This document shows positions 7,829 through 25,800 of a stretch of 64,000 bases of DNA, piece after piece (the stretch's first letter is position 1; every line of letters begins with the position of its first letter). Below the pieces are notes generated by a model. The model had not been told where the DNA came from, did not search any database, and was given only the letters and a program-made list of their open reading frames with translations. The position numbers and the translations under genes are program-made. The stretch is from Thalia democratica (lineage: Eukaryota). The stretch is taken from the NCBI GenBank assembly GCA_965202585.1, contig OZ241827.1:23374001-23438000 (forward strand), given 5' to 3'.

Positions 7829-10800
7829 TTATGCGTTCGACTGAAAAAAGCAATGTTAGTTATTTGTATTTAATTAATTAACAACATTAAATAATAATAA
7901 AAGTACGTATTAAAAATTTTTATAAAAGGTTTTACTCATTTTATTTAAGTAAGTTAAAAATGCTGTTTTTGTTAAAGCTCTAACTTAAGAATAAAGTTAA
8001 AACAGTTTTTCTAAATAACCAAAAAATTTACCGTAGGCTGTAAGTAAGCACCTAACAAAGTTTGCCTCTAATCGACTGATGTCATGCATTTTATTATTAC
8101 TTTTACTTACCCCAAACGCCATAGGGTTATCGAAACCCTTGCTCTGATCTTTGTTGTAAGTCGTGTCGGGAACAGACGTGCTCTTTGATGAAGAATTCTT
8201 CTTGTAGTAGATTCCACCAAACACTGCGGCCGCTATGACAACTATCAACGCAAGTATTATTCCGAACACGGCACCGCCTGAAAATTATTAAACAGAGAAA
8301 TTGATAGGCTCCAACTAAAGTCATAAACAAAACTGACTAGATAACAAAATAACTCAAGTTAAGATTTTGTTTGTAAAAAAAAGTTATCATATATTTCACA
8401 AAAACTAGTTTTTTTTAATAAATGTTTATTTGATAGTAAAGAGGCAAGAGTGAAGTCTTTAACTTTTTTAATTTAGTTGAAATTGTATCGTAAATCATAA
8501 GATGAGCTATTATATATATTAACCTGACAACCCAGTGCTAGAATCATCTTTGGACGGGTCAACTGGATTAATTGGTTGTCCGCCAGATCCTAAAAGTTGT
8601 TCGATTATATTTTAAAATTTTTACTAGTTTAAATGCTTTAGAAGTGGCCAAGGTTAGTTCAAAAACATATTGATATAAGTTACAACTATAAGTAACTTAA
8701 CTATGAAAAGTCAAGTTTTAAAAAGTAATGTTTTTTCAGTGAAATAAATATGTTAAATTTAATTTAAAACTACATTATTTTATAAATAATGCTGATAGCA
8801 GTTTTTTTTTAAAGGTGTTTTTTTACAAGCGTTACGTTTAAAAAAGCTATGAAGTCGAAAGAAACAACTACAACACTGCATGTAACACAACACGATGTTT
8901 TCAATTATGACGTCACACAACCTGACGGGTAGAAGCACCCAGTGATGTTGCCTCCGGCGAAAGTTCTGTCCCAGCAGCAGCCCCTGCTCTCAACACACTG
9001 GTCTTCGGTGATTCCCGCGAATCCGCACTCATCACGTTCGTTCACCGCCACCTTGCATACCGAGTATTCTGTTGAATATTTCGAATGTTGAGTATGTGTT
9101 TTCTCGAAATACTTAATGACTTGATCGTTTATAAGTGATATTAAGCTTTTTTAAGGTTAAGTTTTGTTGTTTTTGTTTTACATAGACACGTTCTTATAAG
9201 TTAGACCTGTAACACCTTAGTTTTTCATTCTGAATATTCAAAGTTTTTTTTATTCAATGTTTAAAGTCTTTTTATCGTTTTTTTATATAAAACAGATAAG
9301 AACTTCGAAATGACTTTGATTTTCATGTTCTATTTTATTAGAAATATTTATAAGTTTTATTATAAACATTGGAAAAAGTTTAATGTCTTTTATGACTAAA
9401 TACAAAAGAATATATTTTTTTAATAGTTATAAAAACACTAGTAAATAAAGATTTCTTTTGGGATGTATAATGTAGAAAAAATATAAGTTGTTTCAATTCT
9501 TAAAAAACTCAACTAGTTAAAATATGTTTTTTAAAACTAAATAAACTTTTAAAAAAATATCTAAAATTGAACCTAATTTTCTTAATTTAAAAATTGAATT
9601 TAAAAAAAAATCAATTCAACTACAACACAAAACGTTTCATACAAAAAAAAAGTTCTCAACCACAAAGCTTAAATCCTACAAAGTTAAAAAATCTATACTT
9701 TTTTCAAACCTTTAGGCCTCTTGCAGACGAACCCCCTGGTTTCGTAGCAGGGCACGTCGTTCCAGCTGCCGTCCCACGGGTACATCTCCACGCACTCCTC
9801 CCCGTCCTGGCCGTTCGGCTCCCCGTTCGCCCAGTTCGAGTACTGGTAAGGAGAACTGTCGCTCCACGTCCATCCCTCTGTATGTGACTCGTTTAGTTTG
9901 TATTAACTTTTTTATACTGCCAATTTTTGAGTACTGAATAGTTTTTCGGGTTGTGTTTTTTAGCAGTTTAGTTGTCAAATTTTCAGTTAAATTTATGGAA
10001 TTTTACTGAACCTATTCCGTTTTAGCCAAGTTTACTAAGTTACAAATAAGTTTTTTTTAAATAGTAAATTAATTTGACAAAAACTTTTGAACATTTCAAA
10101 ACTCACCGTATCCGTTGCTTCTGAGGCCGATGTACAAATTGTGGTAGTTGGGTGAAATCTTGTCGACCAACTGTTTAACTTCTTCTGGGCTGTGAAAGCT
10201 CGCAAGCTCGGCGTTTCGCTTCTTGCATGAAAAGTCCGCCTCCGCCCATGTTTTTGTTTCAGAAGTATATATTCCGGGCTGAAAAATAACTTCCGTAAGC
10301 TAGATTACTAAGCTTGATAGAATATTTTACTAGTTATTGTTTTTTTCACATCATATCGTGAAGTAACATCTATTTTTTAATTCTATTTCAATAAAGTAAT
10401 GTGAATAACAGTATTATACATCCGCGATAGAACGTAAATGGAAACTTGCCGTTTTTTGCTACTTTTATTAATACTAACTTTAAAAATGGAAAAGCTTAGT
10501 TTTTTAGTTGTTCTTAATTAGCACTTGGTAAAAACTACATTTTGTTTCTGTACAAATTACTTCAAGGCCAGAAAAAAATAAGTTTTGCCTAGCAACGAAC
10601 CTCTACATAGTAACAGTCCCTTCCGTCGCTGAACAACCAGTCGTTGTCGCAAACTCCGTCTTCAACGGGGGTTTCCGGGGGAGGGGGAATTTCCTGCAGA
10701 ATTTTCTTGCAAACATAGGGGAGCTGGGTGTTGCAGTTTACCCCCTGAAGCTGGTTGCTAAGCACCTGCCACCTTCCGTTGCTGTGTTATGAAAATTGCG

Positions 10801-13800: not shown

Positions 13801-16800
13801 TTCCAGATAAAAAATACTTTTATACTTTTGAAATGTAAAACCTTGAAAAAAGCTAAAGTGACAGACTTTTAATGAAAGTTGTGTCCAGAAATAAAATTAA
13901 TAAACAAACAAAAGAGTAACAAAAATCAAAGGAATTAAAAGTGTTTGCTTAACAAAAGAACTATTTACTACTTATGTTTTACTTATTTAAGGTTTGAAGT
14001 TTTATTATTTAAGTTGGTTTTTTAAACTTTCCTCATATTTACTGTTTATTGAACGAAAAAATGAAAAATCGCTCAAAGAGTTTTGTCCAAGGACTTGGTG
14101 CACGAAAAAACCTTTAGGTTATCGAGTCGTACACCACGGATACAGTTTTATCAGGTAACTTGTGATTAAATTGTCTATTTAGTTAAAGTATTCATGTCGA
14201 AAATAGTTTTAAAATTTTAGAATTAAAAACTTTTTTAGAACGTTAAAAGTAAAAGATTATATAACATACACTCTGTTAAGCCAGCAGCATTTAATTTATT
14301 GCATACCGTGTCTATAAACTGACCATATTTTGAGTAGAGAAAAAAAGTTACACAAAGTTTTTCAAAAACATAGTACTGACCTTCGCTATCGAGATAGTTG
14401 TTAGGCTCTCCAGCGTTCCAATTCACATAATCTATTGGTGAACCGTCCGCCCAAATAAATGTTCTATCTCCTCTGTCCTGTGAACAAAAGTCACTTATAT
14501 CATTTTTTTTCCGTTTTTTATATCTGCTTAAAAACAGCAACTAAAATACATTGAACATTTAAATATAATTATTGTAAACACTATTGTTTTACTTTGGATT
14601 GTTTTTTATTTTATCACAGCTAAAATTGTTTGAAACGAGGCAATACAACTTTTTTAACAATTAAAGAAATATAACATAAGTTCTAAGAAAAGTCTTCACC
14701 AATTCACAGGTCATACCAAGGTATATTCTCGTACACTTAGTATTCTGTCTTTAGTTTGGTTAAAGTTTTAATTTTTTAACCAAGTTTTTATTCAAGAATG
14801 TTCTTCAATTAAAATAAACCATATCGTTTCAACCATTAACAATTTAATAGCAAAAACAATGTTAATGCGACATTTCATTTTAACTTTCATTTTCATTTAA
14901 ACTAAAAACTAACACTGTTTTAAGATTTTAGAATATCTAGTCATTGAAAATTCAGATGTTTTTATTACAAATACAATGTAGCTTTAGGTTTACTATTCCA
15001 ATGTCAGCTCTATTAGAGAATGTTAAGTATTGTCATGGTCCAAAAAATATCAAAATTTAAACTGAAAAGGATCAATTTTTAACAAAAAGTTAAGAATAAA
15101 AATAGATACAGTGTTTAAGTATTTTGTATGTAAAAAAAGAAACAGCATACTGATAAGTGCGTGTGAATCTCCTTTCAGCTAAGACAAAGGCTGTTATAAA
15201 CAATCCATCTTACTTTATCATATAAAAAATACAAAACTCCAAAACCCACCCTGAGTCCTATCCAGAAGCTGGACGCGGAACTTATTGCGGTCCAGGACTG
15301 CAGCATCAAGCTTTCGTCGTCGCTGTGCACTGCCACCAGCTGGCCGCCCTGTCCCCTGCAGTAATCGTTCGATTGGGGCCAGGTGAGGCGGGAGGACTGG
15401 TCGTTGAACAGGTAGCACTTGTCCTGGTTGTACGACGTTTGGTACCTGACCTGCGTGTGACGTGTTGGTTTAAGTTCGGTTTTGATTAATTTTTCTCTCG
15501 AATTTTTGTATAAATTTTTGTTTAGTTTTGGGGCAATCAAACTTTCCTGAACATTTTTTACAGAAGCTAGTTTTCTCAGAAACGAATTAGTAATTCATAA
15601 AAGAGCTTTTAATTTACTAAAAGTTTTCATCGGTAAAACTTTCGTACAATTTCAAAATAATTAAGTGTCTTCAACATACTTTAAAGCTGGTTGAAAGCAA
15701 ACGTGTTTAGATTAAAAGAGTCTTTGTTTTAATTACTTTAAGTGTTAGTTTGAAGTTGTACTTACCCATGACTGGTCGGTGCCGCACGCGGGGTCAATCT
15801 CGCCCCTTTTAGGTGGTTCTGTTGGCGGTGCTAACGGTGACTTGCCCTTTGCTATTTTGCAAATCCAGTTTCGTTTGCTTTGACATTCAATGTCGTTCCA
15901 ACTGTTAAGATTACATTGAATGATATAAACAGTATATGTTTGTAACAATTTAAATTAGTTGTTAAAGTTTGGGCGAATTCGGAGGGCTTTTTTGATCTTT
16001 TTTTTTTTAATCTTTTCTCTCCGTATTTTTTCAAAGATGTTCGTCGAAAGATGAACGTCTTTTTTTTTACCCATTTTTTTGGCTACCTATAGAGTAACTT
16101 AACAAACATAGTTTCATCCACATCGCTTTCATTTAAGTTTTTCGTATTCAAAAATTAATATTTATAAGATCCTATTATTAAGCAGCAGTTTATGAGAGTA
16201 AGTTTTATGTTACTTTTACAATCAAAAATTAACTGCTATAAATCAGCTTACCCTTCAACGCCTGCGTAAAATTGTCCTTCGATACAATTTTCACTTCCTT
16301 CAAAGTTGTTGGGCTCCCCGTCACCCCAGCTATAGTAATCCGTTGGAGATCCTGAAAAAAAAAATTATATGTTTTTATATTTAAGTTTGAATTACAAACT
16401 ATAAAAAAGCATGTTCTATAAAAAATGTTAGTAATACAGAAGTAATTATATTTATATTAAAAATAAGCTTAATAGTTTGTGGCAGCCATTACCATAAGTT
16501 TAAACTTGTTTTAATGTTATTGTTGTGTTAAGTAAACATTTGTAACACCTGTAAAAAGTATAGTAAATATTTTCAAAATACATTTCATAAATTCTATAAA
16601 AACCTTCATTAAATACTATAAATTTATAAAGAAAACAATTAAAGAAATATTCTAAGCAACTTAACGTAGCCGTCAGCGTCAGGCTGCTGATTATTAAGCC
16701 TGATATGTATATATACACATATATATATATAGGAATCTGCTTGCGTAAAACTTCATCAAGAATATCATAACGTGCATTTTATGTAATCTTTAAAACCGCT

Positions 16801-19800
16801 CTAACTGTTTTCAAATTCCTTAAAAAACAGACTGACTATGTACATTTAAACCAATAAGTATTTTTTGTATCAGGTTATTTATAAAATATTCAAAAACATT
16901 CAAAATATCCCGAATTCAATTTAAATGCACAAAAATAACTAACCGTCGGACCACTGGTATCCGTCTTTGGGGACCAGGTTGTTCAGCCCTATCCAGAAGT
17001 ACACGTAAGAGTTGACGGTGACCCGCTGCACGGCCTGTATCACGCTCGCCTGCTCCTCCTGCGAGTGCACCGACACCAGGTCCGCCCCCAAGTGGCGACA
17101 GTAGTCCACGCTTTCCTGCCACGTCTTCCGGTCAGCGTCGTCCAGAGACTCCATCACCTGATAGTTGAAATATTATAAAGTTATTTTCGATGTCTTAAAT
17201 AAAATTGAATGTTTATATTCCTGAGCAGTAAGTGTCGATACAAAACGTGTTTCAGTATTGCTGTAATTGAAGATTTGTATAAGTTTAAAGTGTTTGCTAT
17301 TTAAATTTAGATTTTAAAAAGTTTTTAAACTTTTTTAATAAAGTAAACTTTTAGAGGTTCTAATACCATTGATTGATAAACAAAATTGACTTTACCAAAC
17401 AGATGATGTCTTTAAAAGCAATAAGCTGCAGTAGAAATTTCTAAACAAACAGCTACTCAAACATACAATAAATAAAATTTCAAAAAATATTGTTCAGAAC
17501 ATTATCACACCATGTAGCAGTAGGATGAAGTGGAATCGCTTAGCCAGCCATCTGGGCAACTCAATGAGGGATCCGGGGTGGTATAGGAAGGTTGCGGGTA
17601 TCCAACCCTCGGTTTCTCGCATACAAAGTGGTAGTCGTTCACACACAAGTCTACGTTCCACTTACCTGTCAGTTGTGAGAAGTGTATCGATCTTATAAGT
17701 TAAATGAGATAAAAAACAAACAGAAAACTTTTTAGTGATTTGACAAACACTTTATTAAATTTGACCCTTATTTTCTTTATCAAAAATACTTAATAGCATT
17801 GGCACTTATATAAAAACAACAGCATAGGTTGAAAAACTTAATTAACTATTTAATTTTGTCTATCGAACAAAATTTAATAGTTACCGAAGATGTAGTAAAC
17901 AAAAACTAATTGTATTTATACCCATTATACAACATCTTTATGAATTTAAAATACATCTAGATATATCAAACTCTACAAATTTAAAATACAGTCTAAAAAA
18001 GACGTTTTCCAACAGCAAACCAACCGTTGATGGGGTCGAGGTAGGTGCAGGCAACAGCCCGCTTGTCGCTGCAGTACATCCAGAAACCGTTGTACTCCGC
18101 ATCGGTGCTGCACCACGGCTCGTTCTGCCTGGCCGGAGACGGCACGTCGGTCGTGCACTCGTTGTACGTCACTCCCTTGTACGTGAACGGCAGCGCGCAC
18201 TCGTACCTCGTTTCTGTTGAACATTTGTATGGTATAAATTTATTTTAAATAGTTTGAAAATTTATTTTATTTATATTGAAAGCATTATTTCATTAGCCCT
18301 CAAATTCTTAAAACTCGTACCTTTTTTATACAAAAGCTATTTTAAAGAAATAAAATGATATTTTTTTCGTTTTTTTTTTACTCTAATTGTTAAGAACTTT
18401 TTGATGTTTAAAATTTATAACTACGCTAAAAGTAAAGTATGTTTAAAATATCTAAAACTTTTGTAAATTTTTTTCCTAGTGTTTCTTTTCTTGAAAACGC
18501 ACAATGAATATTTTGTTTAATGTAAGAAATATTTACGTATGACTAAAATTTAAAAAGTCAACTCGCAATGGTTTATTCTGTTTAACTTTTGATTTTTACT
18601 TTTGAGCCACAAGTTTTAGACTGTTTTATAATAAAAATTGATGCAATCGTCAAACTATGAAACAAATCTAACGGGGCTGTCCAACGTTCCAGTTTGTGTA
18701 AGTGACCGGCTCCTTTGATTCCCATTCGTAAACGATTTCGGCCATGTTGTCGTCTAAATTTCTTCCGGCGAACCCGATCCATGCTGTGTAGTTCAGACCT
18801 GGACGCAGTTTTGCGGACACCTGAAAGTTTTTAGTGTTTGGACACAACACGTTTTTTTAATTACAAACAAGTACATAAAACCAACAACTTTTATTACTTA
18901 CTTCTAACATTATTACTCGTTTACATGAAATTAAAAACCTTGGCTAAAGGTATATTTGAAAATTTGATGATATACTTTGTTATAAAAAAATAGTTGTCAA
19001 AACAGTTGTGTAACCTTAATATTTAACTAATAAAACGCCGATATAATGCGTATGACAGCTTTCAAATAAATATATAAGCCTTTAATTCTTTATAGCGGAT
19101 AAAGCAGTTAAAATTTTAAGGTAAAACAATGCTTATAAGCAGAAACCAAATCGCAAATACAATTTCAACTAACAAGCGAGTTGACGAAGGCTTGCTCGTA
19201 ACCGTCATTGATGCTGACCAGGTACGCTCCGTCTTTGTTCTCAGCGCAAATCTCCCTCGCATACCTGTATATGGTGTCGTCGGTGTTCACGTAGTAGCAC
19301 GAAGACTCTGTTTGACATGTCTCATAAACATTTACGAGTAAATACTAGCTGATAGCGGATAGGAAGTTATTAAACTTTCTTAAAATATAGTATCATCAGT
19401 CAAAAAATCTAAAACAACAATTTAGCAAGACAATTCAGGCATTAAAAAATCTTTAGGAAACTTAAAAACAAATATTATCTATATGTTCCTAAAGACCAAA
19501 TAAATTAGCAACCGACCATAGGCCGACCAGCCGGGGTCGCAGCCTTCTTCCACGGGCAAGTCACCAGTTCCCGTGTCCTCCATCAGTTGCTTGGACTTCT
19601 TACACATGTAGGGCAGCTGCTGGGTGCACTTCTTGTCCGACCAGTACCCCTCCAAACGGATAAATTTCACGCACTGCGGATCCTGACCATTTAATAAGTT
19701 TAGGTTGAGAAAAATAATATATTGCATTATAAGTAGTTTTTTTATGAAAGTTTCATGATAGATAAACTCTTAAAGATTTCTTATTATTTTTTTTTCAATA

Positions 19801-22800
19801 GAAACAGTCAAAAAACTAGAGAAAACCAGATAATCATTTACAAACACAAACATCTATTTTATTATTTGTTGTGTTTATGTTCACAGTTATAAAGAGTCGT
19901 TGACTAGTGTTTTGTTTGCTTAACAGTTAAAAGATCTTAAGGCATTAGCTGATCGCTGAGATAGATTAAAAAAAAAGTTCTAACAAAAATATCAACTAAC
20001 TCCGCCATCTGGTTCGTTGAACGACCACTTAGTATAAGACACAGGAGATCCGTCGACCCATTGGTAGTAGTTGTACTTGTCCAGATCATTCAACCCAATC
20101 CAAACATCTACATCTTCTAAATCTTCTCTGTCTGTTGGTAATAAATTATAGCTAATGTTTTTTTTTTGAAATCATACCAATAGCTTTAGAAAATAAAAGT
20201 AAGTTTTAACATTAACTGTTTTGAAATCAAATAAATTTTAGTTTTAAAAAACCAAAATTTGCAATAGTTATTACCTAAACCATTTAATATTCAATTGAGG
20301 TACAAACACGGTATCCGAAAAATAAGCTCATGCAAAATACTATAGGTGCTTAGTTTAAAGCTTAAAAAAGATTTAAATTATCATCAAGCTAATAAAAATT
20401 CTATACATTTTATTGTTTCTGTTTTTCTAAAATCTTTTTTTTTAATTCGCTGCTGAAACAGATAATAGATTTACACTTTCATTTATAACTCTTTTTTTAG
20501 TCAATTAATACAAAAGGACATCAGCAAACCTTGTTTTTAGCAAACAAGCAATAATAAGTAACTTGAATTATCCATAGATAATAAAGGAAATATAAATATT
20601 TAACAAATAAATGTTAACAACTTTCAATATTATATTAAAACTAACGTCCCTGCCAGATGACACTTTCGACGAAATCGTTTTCTCCCTTGGTGTTGATGCT
20701 GGCCAGGTCTCCTCCCATGTCAATACACTCCTGTCTTGCCTCGTACCACGTCCTCTTCACACCCTTAGGCGAGTAGTAGTAGCAGTGGTCCTTCCACGCC
20801 TTCCAGCCCGCAGCGTCGTCGCACTTAAACACTGTGACGTCATAAACAATTTGTTAACATGTTTTTTTACATTTCCTTTGTATTTAAAAGTTTTAGATTT
20901 TTATTTTTTAATTACGTTTTTAGTCTTTTATTTAAGTAAAACACAATAATGAAAATTTTAACTTTTATAAATAATTATTAAACTGAATAAAAATTTTAGT
21001 CGCTAAAAGGTTTAAATGACAAGCTAGCTTACTAGGGTGGTTGTGTTAAAGTAAAGTTTACTGAGTAACTAGAGTTACCAAAGCGTGTTTACAAACCTTT
21101 TCCTTCGAAGTTGATGGAATTTGCAGATGTTTGGTATCTGTATTTGTTTAATTTTAATTTATTTTAGTTATTACAAGTACGTATTTTTTGTCTAATGACA
21201 AAGTTAAGATGAGGTAACTTTAAGTTGTTTTGTGTTTTTAAATTTTATAAAAATGCTAATGAATGACAGGAAAACTAAAAAAGTTTACTTTAAAAATGTT
21301 AAACTTTACTTGTGCTTGTTTAATTTAGTCATTTTAGTTTAAGTTAGCAAAACTCTAATAAAGTAAAACCGATTAATTTTTAAGTATTTTTGTTAAAAAA
21401 TTTAATTTGATATAAAGCTTATAATGATAAGCAAAAGCTACTACTACTATAATTAAGCATTGATGCTTTAAAAAACGACGAAAGTTTTTTAATTTAATTT
21501 TAATTTAATTAAATAAATTAATTCTTAACTTCATTAGTTTCCTTAATTAATTTATAATACAGCTCAATAGAACTATTGTAAACATATCAACGCTTATCCA
21601 ACTAATTAAAAAGATAGTAGTTGCCTTTAATCATCTTAGTTGATTTCGTTCATTATAGGTTAGCTTTAACTTTTGAAACAAATTAAAACTGAAATCAACA
21701 AACGCTTGTGAGGCGATTCCGTTGTTGACAGAACCGGTGTACTGTGCTTGACCCGCCACCAAAGCGTAACTCACCGATCCGCCATGTTTGTTGTTCAGTC
21801 TTCCCGCGTGGATTGCGGCCGGACAAATTGCGGATTCCTGCGCAGTTTAAAAAAAACATTGGTTTTACACACAAAACAGTTGTTTTTAGTGTACATAGTC
21901 GTTAACTTTGTTGATTTACTGTCTTAATTCGGTAGCTTTTTTTTTACCAGACTTAAACTATTTGTTAAGAAAAATAATTGTGATCATACGACGTTATCTA
22001 AATATAAAAAACAAAATAACTATTTAAAATTAAAACATTTTTGTCTTATTCATTTATTTCTTAATTTTTATCGACCAACGAACCTGGGCATATCTTTGTT
22101 TAGACACGTCACCTCCGCCGTATACCGGACCGCTGGACGGATCTTCGACGCATCCTGCCGGACAGTCTATTGTGACGTCATTGTTGAGGCCAGTGTCAAA
22201 CTCCTTCGCAGTGTCTGCCGAATATTTTGATTACTTTTGGTCGTACAGTTTTTTCGGTAGTTTTCCAAATACAAATTAAAGAGCTTTAATGCAATTTGTA
22301 AATTTGGTCTTTAAATACAGGCTATCATCGCAATGTTTTTGTCACATGAACTGCTATTAATACTGGACATCTTTACTTATTTAAGAAATAAAGTTAAAAA
22401 GTTATTCTTGTTTTGAATTTTACTTTTGGCATAGAAGTTTTTTTAAGTATGTTTTGAAACCCTTTTTGAAAACGAGTAAAACTTTCAATTTTTTTTTTCT
22501 CAAAGAATTATTCATATTAGTTGTCTAAGTACTGTGTGACATATGCTTTTAAACCAATTCTTTTTATTAAACCTCAACAATATCAATTACCTGCACAAGT
22601 GATCCTCTCGTAGTTGTAGCAGCCCATCACTTCGAACTGCATCACGATGTTTCCCACCCAAGTCCTCGGGATCAGCCTCAGGCTCTTGGTCGCGATCGGC
22701 TCCCTGAAGATCGACTCCTCGTTCGTAACCTGATCGTGAAGCCCCTCGAATATCTGGTTAATTGAAGCATTTTTATATAAGCTCTCTAATCTAACAGTAT

Positions 22801-25800
22801 ATACTTTAACTAGTTAGGGCAATGAAGTAAAAAGATACAGTTTTAAAAAGATCCATTAAACTTTTTGGTTGGTTTAAGCCAAAAATCTTATATTTATAAA
22901 CTCACATGCATAAACCCTTCTTGGTTGGTGTAATAGTTGAACTTTTGCCCATCGTCACTGAATTGTATGTTGTAAGAAGTGAGGTAGTTTCCTGTTGTTG
23001 TAGTTCCGTACAAGGTTATTCCTGATACCTTAGATATATTTATGAAATTTAATATTGTTACATAGCTATTATTGTAGTAAGATGAGTTAATCGTTTATTG
23101 ACTTTTACTTACTTGAAGCAGTTTCTTTTTTGTCAAAAAACTTTGTAAATAAAAATAAAAACACTGCTATCAACATTGTTAAAGTTCAATGCTTCATAAG
23201 CTTTCTGTTTGTGAAAGAAATAAAATTTTAGTTAAAATACAATACTTCAAGCTGAAATGTTTCCCACGTTCTTGCTTGGTTTTCGAAAAATACAAAAAAC
23301 TTTGTAGAAATGTTTTCAAACCTTGAAGAAGTCTTTAAAAGAAACTTGTATCCATTCAGTAGCTGCATTAGTAGATGGAGTCCAGCCGGTTGGTGTGTAC
23401 GCTGTATGTTAACAATTTTCAGTGAAGAAAAAGGATGTATCTTAAGATCTGGTACCCGTAATTAAATTAAAAAATGTTCAGCTTGTGATGCTAGCTACTT
23501 TTTCAACTAATGAAAAGTTTATGTGTTAATTTACAATTGTTTAATATTAAAAAAGAACACAAACATATTTCAATTTTTCAATATTTTAAATAGTCAAACT
23601 ATACTTTAAAGAAAGTATGCTTATTTAAAATTATATATTAGTAAATAAAAAGTCACAAAATCAGGTTTAATATGCATGTTAAAGTAATTTGAACAGAGAC
23701 TTAAATACGATTAGCCCTAATGGTAAACTTTAAGTTTTACAAAAGACTTGTTTAATCTTGGAAAAAGCTCAAATTTTATAAAATTTAGATAATAAACACA
23801 TAGGAAAAGTTCTAAAAATAAATACATATAAAAGATAAATTAAAACTACTTAAGACGCATTATTACGTCACGAATAAACTAACAGGGACACGTTGGCACG
23901 TCACAATACTCCCATTCTTTGGTGGGGTCCGGAGAATAACACCAGGGTCCATCTTTACCGTCCGGATTTCTGCATTTGTTTTCCCTCAGCCCTGCATCCG
24001 GGTTGGTAGTCGGGTTGCTAGGTAACAGAATAAGTTGATTAAATGTTTACATTCGCAAACGTATAATTTAGTGTTTGATATTTAGTTTTATTTTATCTTA
24101 AAAAAGTTTTAAATTTTTGTAACTTTTTTTTGTATAGAAAAGTAATTTTTTCACAGTCTTGTAATATGTTACTACAAATAAAAAGAATTTTATTTTGTTT
24201 GAAGCTGTATTTATAAACAATCTTAACGTATTAAGTAAAAAACTTCGATGTACATATATCAAAACAGTAGCTTTTTTACTTTGACATCAACTTAAAATTA
24301 CAACTAACATTTTGTTGGTAGGATCCGTCCAGTCTTTACAATCGAGACCAGTGACAGTCTTGCTGACGAATCCCCTATAACCTGCTCCATTGTCGTTGCT
24401 ATCAGCCAAACACGAGACTGAATATAATTTGGTTAGCTTTAGTTGAATTAAAACAAAAAAAAAGACATGTAGGTTAAAGTTTTAAACAGTTAGGGGATTT
24501 GTAGAGGTTGGTATGAATACCAAAAAAACGTTAGTTAAGTAAAATTCAAGGAATTTTCATAAATAAAAGAAGTAGTTATATTGCTAGTAAAGATTCACGG
24601 AAATTATTTTTAACATGACAAATAACTTAAGTTAAATAGATTAATTTAATTTAGCTTTTTAGAACTTCAACAATTTTAATTATCGTAGTTATTTAAAGAT
24701 TTCAAACTCAAAAATGTATTTAACACAATAGTTATTATATTTCTATTTTTTCAAGACTTTATTGTGAATTATCTTATTTGCATTATTATGCTTTATTATG
24801 CATTATCTTATCGTAGTTGAGATCTCTTAATTTGTTTTCTAAAAATCAAAACATATAGTAATAGTTGTTATTATAAACTTGAACAAACATACTAAAGGCT
24901 GCGGTCACAACATAACGTACAACTGTTAAGTTTTTATAATCAGTTTTATTTATTCACACTCTACTTGATAGAGCTTGTATTTATTAGTTTTGTGAAATTA
25001 ATCACTAATGGATATATTGTTAAACTTAACGGTTTTAGCTTATTTTTGCTTAAAACTATAGTTTAACTCTATAGTTGATCCAAACATTTTTATAAATCAA
25101 AATAAAATAAAAACACCTAAAACAGGTAAAAAAGTAATAACTTTGCAAACTAACAATCGTTTTGAAGAGTGGCTCTCGCCTGTTTAGCTTCGTGTCCGGA
25201 GGTGGAGGAAGATGCGGTTATCGAATTATCAGGAATGAAGCCATCAGCCATGCCAAGAGGGTGAAGACAACCTGAATGCAAATGTGATTTTTTTTACAAT
25301 CAATAACAATATTTTAACAAACAGTGAACTTTTACTTATTTGGTAATATTTATTTTTTTTTAGTTTTAAAACTTTTGTTGAATAAGAATTACCTAAAAAA
25401 ACTGTTTACTTACAAAATAAATTGAGATAGAAAGTTTCTTTATTATTAAAATAATTTATTTTTATCTTAAAACGGTCCATGTAAAAAATATATCGAAAAC
25501 TAAGCATATTTCTGGCAGTCTACAAACTAACTATAAATAGTTTAAATTTCCATTCAAACTAACTGTTATTACAGCCGATATATTCCAGCCTCATGATGCA
25601 ATCATCGAACCACTCCAAGGGGTACAACCTCATGTGAGTGGCCACGACGCTCCTTGGAAATATATTTGTCACGTGGGTGTTCTGGTCTGAGTTTCCACCG
25701 AATTCCTGAAAGAAACAGTTAAACTTAGTTGATAGAAGTTATTGTAAACTAGACATAAGCTGAAAGATGCTTTATATTTTAAAAAATTATAGAAATTATT

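Follow-up and report, generated by a model that had tools for sequence, protein, structure and literature searches.

Can a C-type lectin-like domain (CTLD) hold a complete foreign module at the very place where it would otherwise bind sugar? The question is raised by a 64,000-nucleotide stretch of the Thalia democratica genome (C2:23,374,001-23,438,000 of an 802 Mb genome; hereafter the window), in which a sequence-only reading had noted a full four-cysteine fibronectin type II (FN2) module at 18025-18213, apparently grafted into the long loop of the seventh CTLD ("CTLD7") of a large minus-strand gene for a mosaic receptor. Our overall best reading, to which we assign a probability of roughly 0.7, is that this is a real and probably constitutive domain-in-domain arrangement, with the CTLD hosting the FN2 in place of its sugar site. 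The window is AT-rich and free of N runs, with introns of ~22-30% GC and short, GC-richer exons.

A fibronectin type II exon within a C-type lectin-like domain

The host CTLD and its insert are distributed over four exons, of which those directly before and after the FN2 exon are called exon A and exon C.

19174-19308, minus strand: N-terminal exon of the host CTLD ("CTLD7"), with Cys0' and Cys1 (Lectin_C positions 5-35; RNA junction 18820|19174)
18673-18820, minus strand: exon A of the host CTLD, from the WIGF motif to "..YTNWNVGQP" (PDB matches to CTLDs; RNA junctions on both sides)
18025-18213, minus strand: the whole FN2-bearing exon, 189 nt, phase 1-1, AG/GT borders (sequence and RNA junctions)
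18071-18199, minus strand: the FN2 module itself, from Cys5 to Cys47 in the translated exon (Pfam fn2; a six-frame scan of the genome places the match at exactly these bases)
17613-17665, minus strand: C-terminal piece of the host CTLD, in exon C, with the WND-like motif, Cys3 and Cys4 (aligns to the CTLD end of ASGR2/CLEC10A; RNA junction)
17511-17612, minus strand: rest of exon C, with a conserved linker and then the first part of the following CTLD, which is of the canonical EPN/WND kind (open frame, Pfam, paralogue comparison)

Read from 18213 down to 18025, the FN2 exon is preceded by "...ttcaacag" and followed by "gttggt". Its translation (window:18026-18211:-) has 62 residues, comprising four lead-in residues, the FN2, and then 15 residues of the host CTLD, which correspond to the β3 strand with Cys2 and are followed by (G) at the split codon. 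The complete Pfam fn2 profile (PF00040; positions 1-42 of 42) aligned to this translation with a score of 44 bits (cut-off 22.2; E = 2.2e-11), and the six-frame genome scan scored the same exon at 43.2 bits. The four cysteines (C5, C19, C34, and C47), which in FN2 modules pair C1-C3 and C2-C4, follow the spacing C-x13-C-x(13-16)-C-x12-C and are invariant in an alignment of 32 sequences, and the aromatic core (PF.Y, WC, Y, W) is complete (F9, Y11, W33, Y40, and W44). A PDB sequence search with the exon returned FN2-bearing chains only (MMP-9, FN1/fibronectin, MMP-2, and PDC-109).

An AlphaFold2 (AF2) model of the exon, computed from the alignment of 32 FN2 sequences drawn from this genome and from metagenome loci, had a mean predicted local distance difference test score (pLDDT) of 74.9, with ten-residue block means of 73-90 over residues 1-50. 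The last 12 residues had low pLDDT, as expected because they form a strand without the rest of its domain. When this model was compared with the PDB using Foldseek, all top matches were FN2 modules (template modeling [TM] score 0.51-0.63, root mean square deviation [RMSD] 1.6-3.5), led by PDC-109 (1h8p, TM 0.60, RMSD 2.7) and followed by modules of MMP-2, fibronectin, factor XII, the mannose receptor, uPARAP, and the FN2 inside domain 13 of IGF2R. An earlier model from a 5-sequence alignment (pLDDT 52) was discarded as too poor. By profile and predicted structure, exon 18025-18213 encodes a complete FN2 with the FN2 fold, as the sequence-only reading had it, although it is not a pure module exon, since the 15 host-CTLD residues are encoded in it as well.

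The two halves of the host CTLD can be followed up to the edges of this insert. Exon A ends in phase 1 with "...YTNWNVGQP", directly after the QP of the EPN/QPD position, and exon C opens with "(G)" and then "KWNV..C..FVCEK". Exon A alone matched MRC1 CTLD2 (5xts, E = 2.3e-4), CL-P1, and MBP-C in the PDB, with every alignment stopping at EP/QP; a profile of exon A and its paralogues matched CTLDs only (MRC1 at E = 6e-7, as well as MRC2, PLA2R, MBP-A, and SP-D), with the same end point. Exon C aligned to "RWNDD.C....WVCE" of ASGR2 and CLEC10A, at E = 0.2-1 alone and at 0.017 and ~0.065 as a paralogue profile. Against a reference from this gene itself, an intact CTLD half (window:9696-9902:-; Lectin_C positions 48-107, E = 4e-11), piecewise alignment ended exon A at the reference "EP", placed the "AC" of the FN2-exon tail on Cys2, and set exon C on "WNDVPC...FVC", with ~5 loop residues of a normal CTLD replaced by ~52 residues containing the FN2. 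All cysteines of a long-form CTLD (C0, C0', and C1-C4) are present, in the order CDPGW / SSCYY / REIC / AVAC / VDLC / FVC, as is AWIGF; the cysteine total is an even ten, six from the host CTLD and four from the FN2. These alignments place the FN2 within the EPN/QPD-to-β3 loop of approximately the seventh CTLD, on its Ca2+/sugar-binding face, and the sequence-only assignment to the EPN/QPD position holds, as alignments to CTLDs of known structure break off at EP/QP and pick up again at WND. The retention of the six cysteines and of the WIGL-type core suggests that the host CTLD still folds around the insert.

The exon was found in seven sequencing runs, four of them marine metatranscriptomes of one study and three of them unlabeled runs from 2025. 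Contigs of four runs (X1, X2, X3, and X5) were aligned to 15150-20900, and the junctions cited here are among those listed from these alignments. Junction 18213|18673, upstream of the FN2 exon, is present in X1 and X2, and junction 17665|18025, downstream of it, in X1, X2, and X3; both, like the junction 18820|19174 within the host CTLD, are of the GT..AG type when read on the minus strand. In X2, record 7 (461 nt) is a single contig running across exon A, the FN2 exon, and exon C, and in X3, record 11 connects the FN2 exon with exon C, differing from the window at 2 of 160 nt (~99% identity). X5 covers the introns evenly, lacks the junctions of the FN2 exon, and behaves as DNA. The CTLD-FN2-CTLD layout is thus transcribed. 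A cDNA without this exon, or with a complete CTLD C-terminus ahead of it, had been named beforehand as what would speak against the nesting; the RNA includes the exon, and no complete C-terminus precedes it. An artefact of assembly or gene modeling, in which the FN2 exon would belong to another gene or to a misjoined contig, is hardly credible, given that a single RNA contig joins the three exons at canonical splice sites, that the same junctions occur in three runs, and that the same arrangement is found at four other places in the genome.

The RNA also bears on whether the FN2 exon might be an optional cassette, present in some isoforms and absent from others. With a length divisible by three and the same phase at both ends (189 nt, phase 1-1), it could be skipped without loss of the reading frame, and assembled contigs drop rare variants. 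However, the exon does not look like a removable cassette, because skipping 18025-18213 would also delete the β3 strand and Cys2, leaving Cys3 unpaired and breaking the CTLD. Moreover, the skipping junction 17665|18673 is not among the junctions listed for the assembled contigs of the three RNA runs, and all paralogues keep the same fused exon. We therefore regard a cassette as improbable, and a nesting that is both real and constitutive as highly probable.

A separate irregularity occurs at the start of the host CTLD, where the RNA junction at 19308-19519 has non-canonical TG..CA ends and, in X1 and X2, a surplus G at the point of joining; the alignment may be offset there, the site may be polymorphic, or splicing may use an unusual site.

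Paralogues, relatives, and origin of the insert

A search of the genome with the exon found four places besides the window, as follows.

L020, contig C2, ~120 kb away, inverted: FN2 exon 100% identical to that of the window
L017, contig C4: FN2 exon 42-43% identical to that of the window
L018, contig C287, a small contig that looks like a second haplotype of C4: FN2 exon 42-43% identical to that of the window
L033, contig C6: FN2 exon 48% identical to that of the window

In all copies, the FN2 and the motif "C-I/Y-T/L-LDP..G" share a 189-nt exon of phase 1-1; the exon before it ends "...W..G/D-S/Q-P" and the exon after it starts ".WNS..C...YYVCEKP". The nesting is therefore conserved, with the same exon, phases, and position. 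Within the FN2 exon, five cysteines, A6, P8, F9, Y11, G13, W33, and W44 are invariant across paralogues. The copies on C4 and C287 differ in this exon by 8 synonymous and 0 non-synonymous changes, and among the variants listed from RNA, 5 of 7 in the FN2 exon are synonymous (both replacements lie in the loop between Cys3 and Trp44), as are 12 of 13 in the flanking exons. In the window, as on C4, C287, and C6, the FN2 has a kringle match 4-6 kb upstream, and therefore the whole mosaic genes are paralogous. As judged from these comparisons, the layout is old enough to be common to three diverged paralogues (on the chromosome-scale contigs C2, C4, and C6) and is under purifying selection.

This conservation extends to the host. 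If the flanking CTLD were a decayed remnant, its halves would no longer fold and the FN2 would in effect lie free between linker segments, a view with which the loss of sugar and Ca2+ ligands and the weak scores of the single CTLD pieces against Pfam would agree. However, all six CTLD cysteines and the WIG, W..W, WN, and F/Y-V-C-E-K signatures are kept across paralogues at ~50-63% identity, the variation is mostly synonymous, and the profiles of the CTLD pieces match only CTLDs in the PDB. Decay of the host is accordingly a very remote prospect, more so than an optional exon, and a CTLD that still folds around its FN2 is the reading we retain.

The origin of the insert is less simple than its phases would suggest. 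Shuffled modules are typically encoded by symmetric phase-1 exons. Where other CTLDs of the gene have an intron near the EPN position, however, it is in phase 0 and lies a few residues later. A pure module exon dropped into a shared intron was set aside as a simple reading, given these introns and the fusion of the FN2 to 15 host codons. An insertion followed by loss of one intron is possible, though speculative.

Compared with L020:1487-1675, the other copy on C2, the FN2 exon of the window is identical in DNA, whereas exon A has 7 differences and exon C has 5, and the flanking introns are ~93% and ~70% identical. Third-position GC is 0.90 in the FN2 exon versus 0.59-0.63 in the flanking exons; the C4 paralogue shows a similar contrast (0.77 versus 0.43-0.51). 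The FN2 exon may be a focus of gene conversion or of GC-biased conversion.

Searches outside this genome returned mostly ordinary FN2 proteins. The 62-residue exon gave 617 matches among the representatives of a protein library, of which the best 150 are FN2 proteins of the ordinary kind, with the module single or in tandem. None of these 150 fitted a pattern of an FN2 followed by a CTLD C-terminus; only P0103, a 76-residue product of a 2.1-kb contig in another public assembly, combines an FN2 with a "CTYLD" tail. P0103 is 47% identical, reads "GCTYLDDQTG" after its FN2, and forms a cluster of one member. It was also the only sequence returned by a word search with the paralogue alignment, the length window of which excludes full-length proteins. 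A scan of metagenome contigs yielded 16 loci with a related FN2, all of them ordinary FN2 arrays without a CTLD tail. Six-frame scans of this genome gave no match to tunicate-type cellulose synthase (PF03552) or GH6 (PF01341), a weak negative given that the scanning went exon by exon. FN2 modules themselves are common in the genome, with at least 38 fn2 matches, several of which lie in tandem arrays of the ordinary kind without a CTLD tail (C6:73.22-73.24 Mb, C2:45.30 Mb, C6:56.24 Mb, and C1:45.67 Mb).

The sugar site of the host and the pocket of the insert

At site 2 of a canonical C-type domain, the ligands come from E/Q-P-N/D, from a Glu at the second position ahead of Cys2, and from W-N-D; the CTLD that follows the host in this gene carries all of them ("GEPNN..SENC..SWNDIEC"). 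The corresponding positions of the host CTLD read QPQ (with a Q from the codon split between exon A and the FN2 exon), V at the second position ahead of Cys2, and WNV. The change from WND to WNV reported from sequence alone is thus correct, and the acidic ligand before Cys2 is lost as well; the reported ending "YTNWNVGQP" also stands, refined by the split codon, which adds a Q and makes the motif QPQ. The host CTLDs of the paralogues have SPD or QPA for the first motif and WNS for WND. Measured against the five ligands of a Ca2+/sugar site, the host CTLD lacks two, and the third residue of its first motif is unconserved; for these reasons canonical Ca2+-dependent sugar binding is unlikely, and the canonical sugar site of the host is probably dead.

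The pocket of the insert, in contrast to the ligands of its host, is kept. The ligand pocket of FnII modules generally lies between two Trp and an aromatic residue of a short helix (PMC12216678), and the phosphorylcholine site of PDC-109 domain a is formed by Y30, W47, Y54, and W58, with Y60 at its rim (PMC2823774). When aligned to that domain, the exon has identical residues at all five positions (Y11, W33, Y40, W44, and Y46). In the mechanism that we propose, the CTLD would serve as a pedestal, folding around the insert with its own sugar site inactive, and the aromatic pocket of the FN2 would be a working, exposed binding site atop it. The likely ligand would be a proline-rich or collagen-like peptide or a choline-type head group. 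The scaffold role that the sequence-only reading had proposed for the CTLD, displaying a putative collagen- or lipid-binding FN2, is suggested by the conserved pocket residues, and an external ligand for the FN2 pocket is a tentative proposal whose chances we place slightly short of even. Fine ligand chemistry may differ among paralogues even where the pocket is kept.

The main rival to a ligand site is that the nested FN2 acts mainly as an internal brace, contacting neighboring domains and tuning their binding or the shape of the receptor with no external ligand. The precedent is IGF2R, a multi-repeat lectin-type receptor in which the FN2 of domain 13 supports domain 11 (PMC7015683), and the FN2 of the window matches it in structure. 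In favor of this view, too, the CTLD next to the host has a fully canonical EPN/WND site. Furthermore, the linker between the two ("EKPRVGY.QP.YTTPDP", 17511-17612) is the most conserved stretch among the three paralogues, above either domain, which hints at a fixed relative geometry of CTLD7 and CTLD8 or at a modification site. A pure brace would, however, need the fold only, whereas the solvent-exposed aromatic residues of the pocket are conserved. We consider a predominantly bracing role unlikely, although less so than any of the alternatives to the nesting itself; the brace and the ligand site are not mutually exclusive.

Several points weigh against a CTLD that hosts a functional FN2 in place of its sugar site. 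First, the three CTLD pieces, when scanned singly, stay below the Pfam Lectin_C cut-off: the N-terminal exon matched Lectin_C (PF00059) at positions 5-35 with 18 bits against a cut-off of 22.6 (E = 0.005), and exons A and C have no Pfam match alone. That the two halves of the CTLD assemble correctly around the insert is an inference pieced together from separate exons. Second, the Gln/Asn pair of QPQ and WN could still hold a Ca2+ ion. Third, two pocket residues vary in paralogues, Y40 being replaced by F and Y46 by N or S. Fourth, the RNA evidence consists of assembled contigs from metatranscriptomes of wild samples, which cannot show rare isoforms, and P0103 is the only candidate relative found outside this genome.

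Nested FN2 modules have precedents, which the sequence-only reading had overlooked. In IGF2R, a single FN2 is nested between β8 and β9 of domain 13 (PMC7015683). Like the receptor of the window, IGF2R is a long type I receptor of the lectin type, built from many repeats, one of which has a single FN2 in a loop (PMC7015683), and the two FN2 modules match in structure (PDB 2v5o and 6um2). The host in IGF2R is, however, a P-type (MRH) β-barrel rather than a C-type lectin fold with the insertion at the Ca2+/sugar site itself, and the receptors have no sequence relationship beyond the FN2. The gelatinases MMP-2 and MMP-9 also nest FN2 modules in another domain, where they supply the gelatin/collagen site, and they gave the best PDB sequence matches to the FN2 of the window (1l6j, 1eak, and 1ck7). 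Unlike the single FN2 in a lectin fold seen here, theirs are three in tandem within a metalloprotease catalytic domain, with a longer "YD.D..W" loop, whereas the FN2 of the window is of a short-loop, PDC-109-like kind. PDC-109 and the BSP proteins are closest in the module itself, with the best structural match (1h8p), the closest loop lengths, and five identical pocket residues of domain a (PMC2823774), but they are small secreted proteins with two free FN2 modules that bind phosphorylcholine and collagen and have no host domain.

FN2 modules beside CTLDs are known in the mannose receptor family and its invertebrate relatives (PMC10341498), and our literature search found no description of an FN2, or of any complete module, inside a CTLD. 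A nested FN2 is therefore already known, while the CTLD as its host seems new, adding the C-type lectin fold as a third type of host to the metalloprotease and the P-type lectin repeat. The diversification of CTLDs is usually attributed to changed loop residues or to loss of the long loop. A foreign disulfide-bonded module that sits at the sugar site and has long been kept by several paralogues would be another way to gain new specificity, and the layout would be a natural counterpart to engineered, loop-grafted CTLD scaffolds. The nested FN2 leaves general principles unchanged, and we give it moderate weight.

The mosaic receptor gene

The exons described above belong to a gene whose outline is given by the following features.

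8000-37222, minus strand (approximate extent): the mosaic receptor gene (open frames with raised GC, single-exon Pfam matches, and RNA junctions for 15.2-20.9 kb)
8000-8284, minus strand (approximate): open frame predicting a transmembrane helix followed by a short tail on the cytoplasmic side, with "FDNPMAF" in it (peak hydropathy of 2.96 in a 19-residue span)

Single exons of the gene matched Kringle (E = 2.4e-14), LCCL (7.5e-12), Trefoil (1.6e-11), a piece of F5_F8_type_C (E = 0.0019), and several pieces of Lectin_C, and the open frames give a count of ~12 CTLDs. The frame with the transmembrane helix lies just downstream of the trefoil exon. The predicted product is a type I membrane mosaic of ~12 CTLDs with discoidin, kringle, LCCL, and trefoil domains and a transmembrane helix.

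The sequence-only reading had set this gene against the mannose receptor family (MRC1, MRC2/Endo180, PLA2R1, and LY75), a framing that proves loose. In that family, an N-terminal ricin-type domain is followed by one free FN2 and 8-10 CTLDs, and the protein ends with a transmembrane helix and a short tail; domains of other types are absent. The product described here shares with it a type I topology, a long row of tandem CTLDs, a single FN2, and a short tail bearing an internalization-type motif; the CTLDs of the family are mostly sugar-blind, and the best PDB matches of exon A are CTLDs of MRC1 and MRC2. In the gene of the window, a transmembrane helix and short tail are likewise present, but the FN2 lies inside a CTLD rather than as a separate, N-terminal module after the ricin-type domain, and discoidin, kringle, LCCL, and trefoil domains are added. 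For these two reasons the gene is not filed in, and is not a member of, the mannose receptor family.

The FN2 had also been described as the second, independent nested domain of this gene. A kringle match at 23882-24046 does lie among discoidin-like exons (25153-25738 and 22586-22813) on the minus strand of the same gene, in line with that claim, although the nesting of the kringle is putative. The kringle is a distant structural relative of FN2. It would be a bolder extrapolation, and one that we hold to be rather doubtful, that the long loop of CTLDs is a natural grafting site: lineage-specific, giant, endocytic-type receptors would have placed an FN2 at the sugar site of one CTLD and a kringle into a discoidin domain, with nested modules forming composite surfaces with their hosts, as a recurrent and selectable re-tooling by exon insertion for which no CTLD-hosted nested domain had been described before.

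The cytoplasmic tail carries a further feature of its own. Its "FDNPMAF" is a motif of the FxNPxF type, like the internalization signals of endocytic receptors, and together with the predicted transmembrane helix it suggests a receptor that can be internalized.

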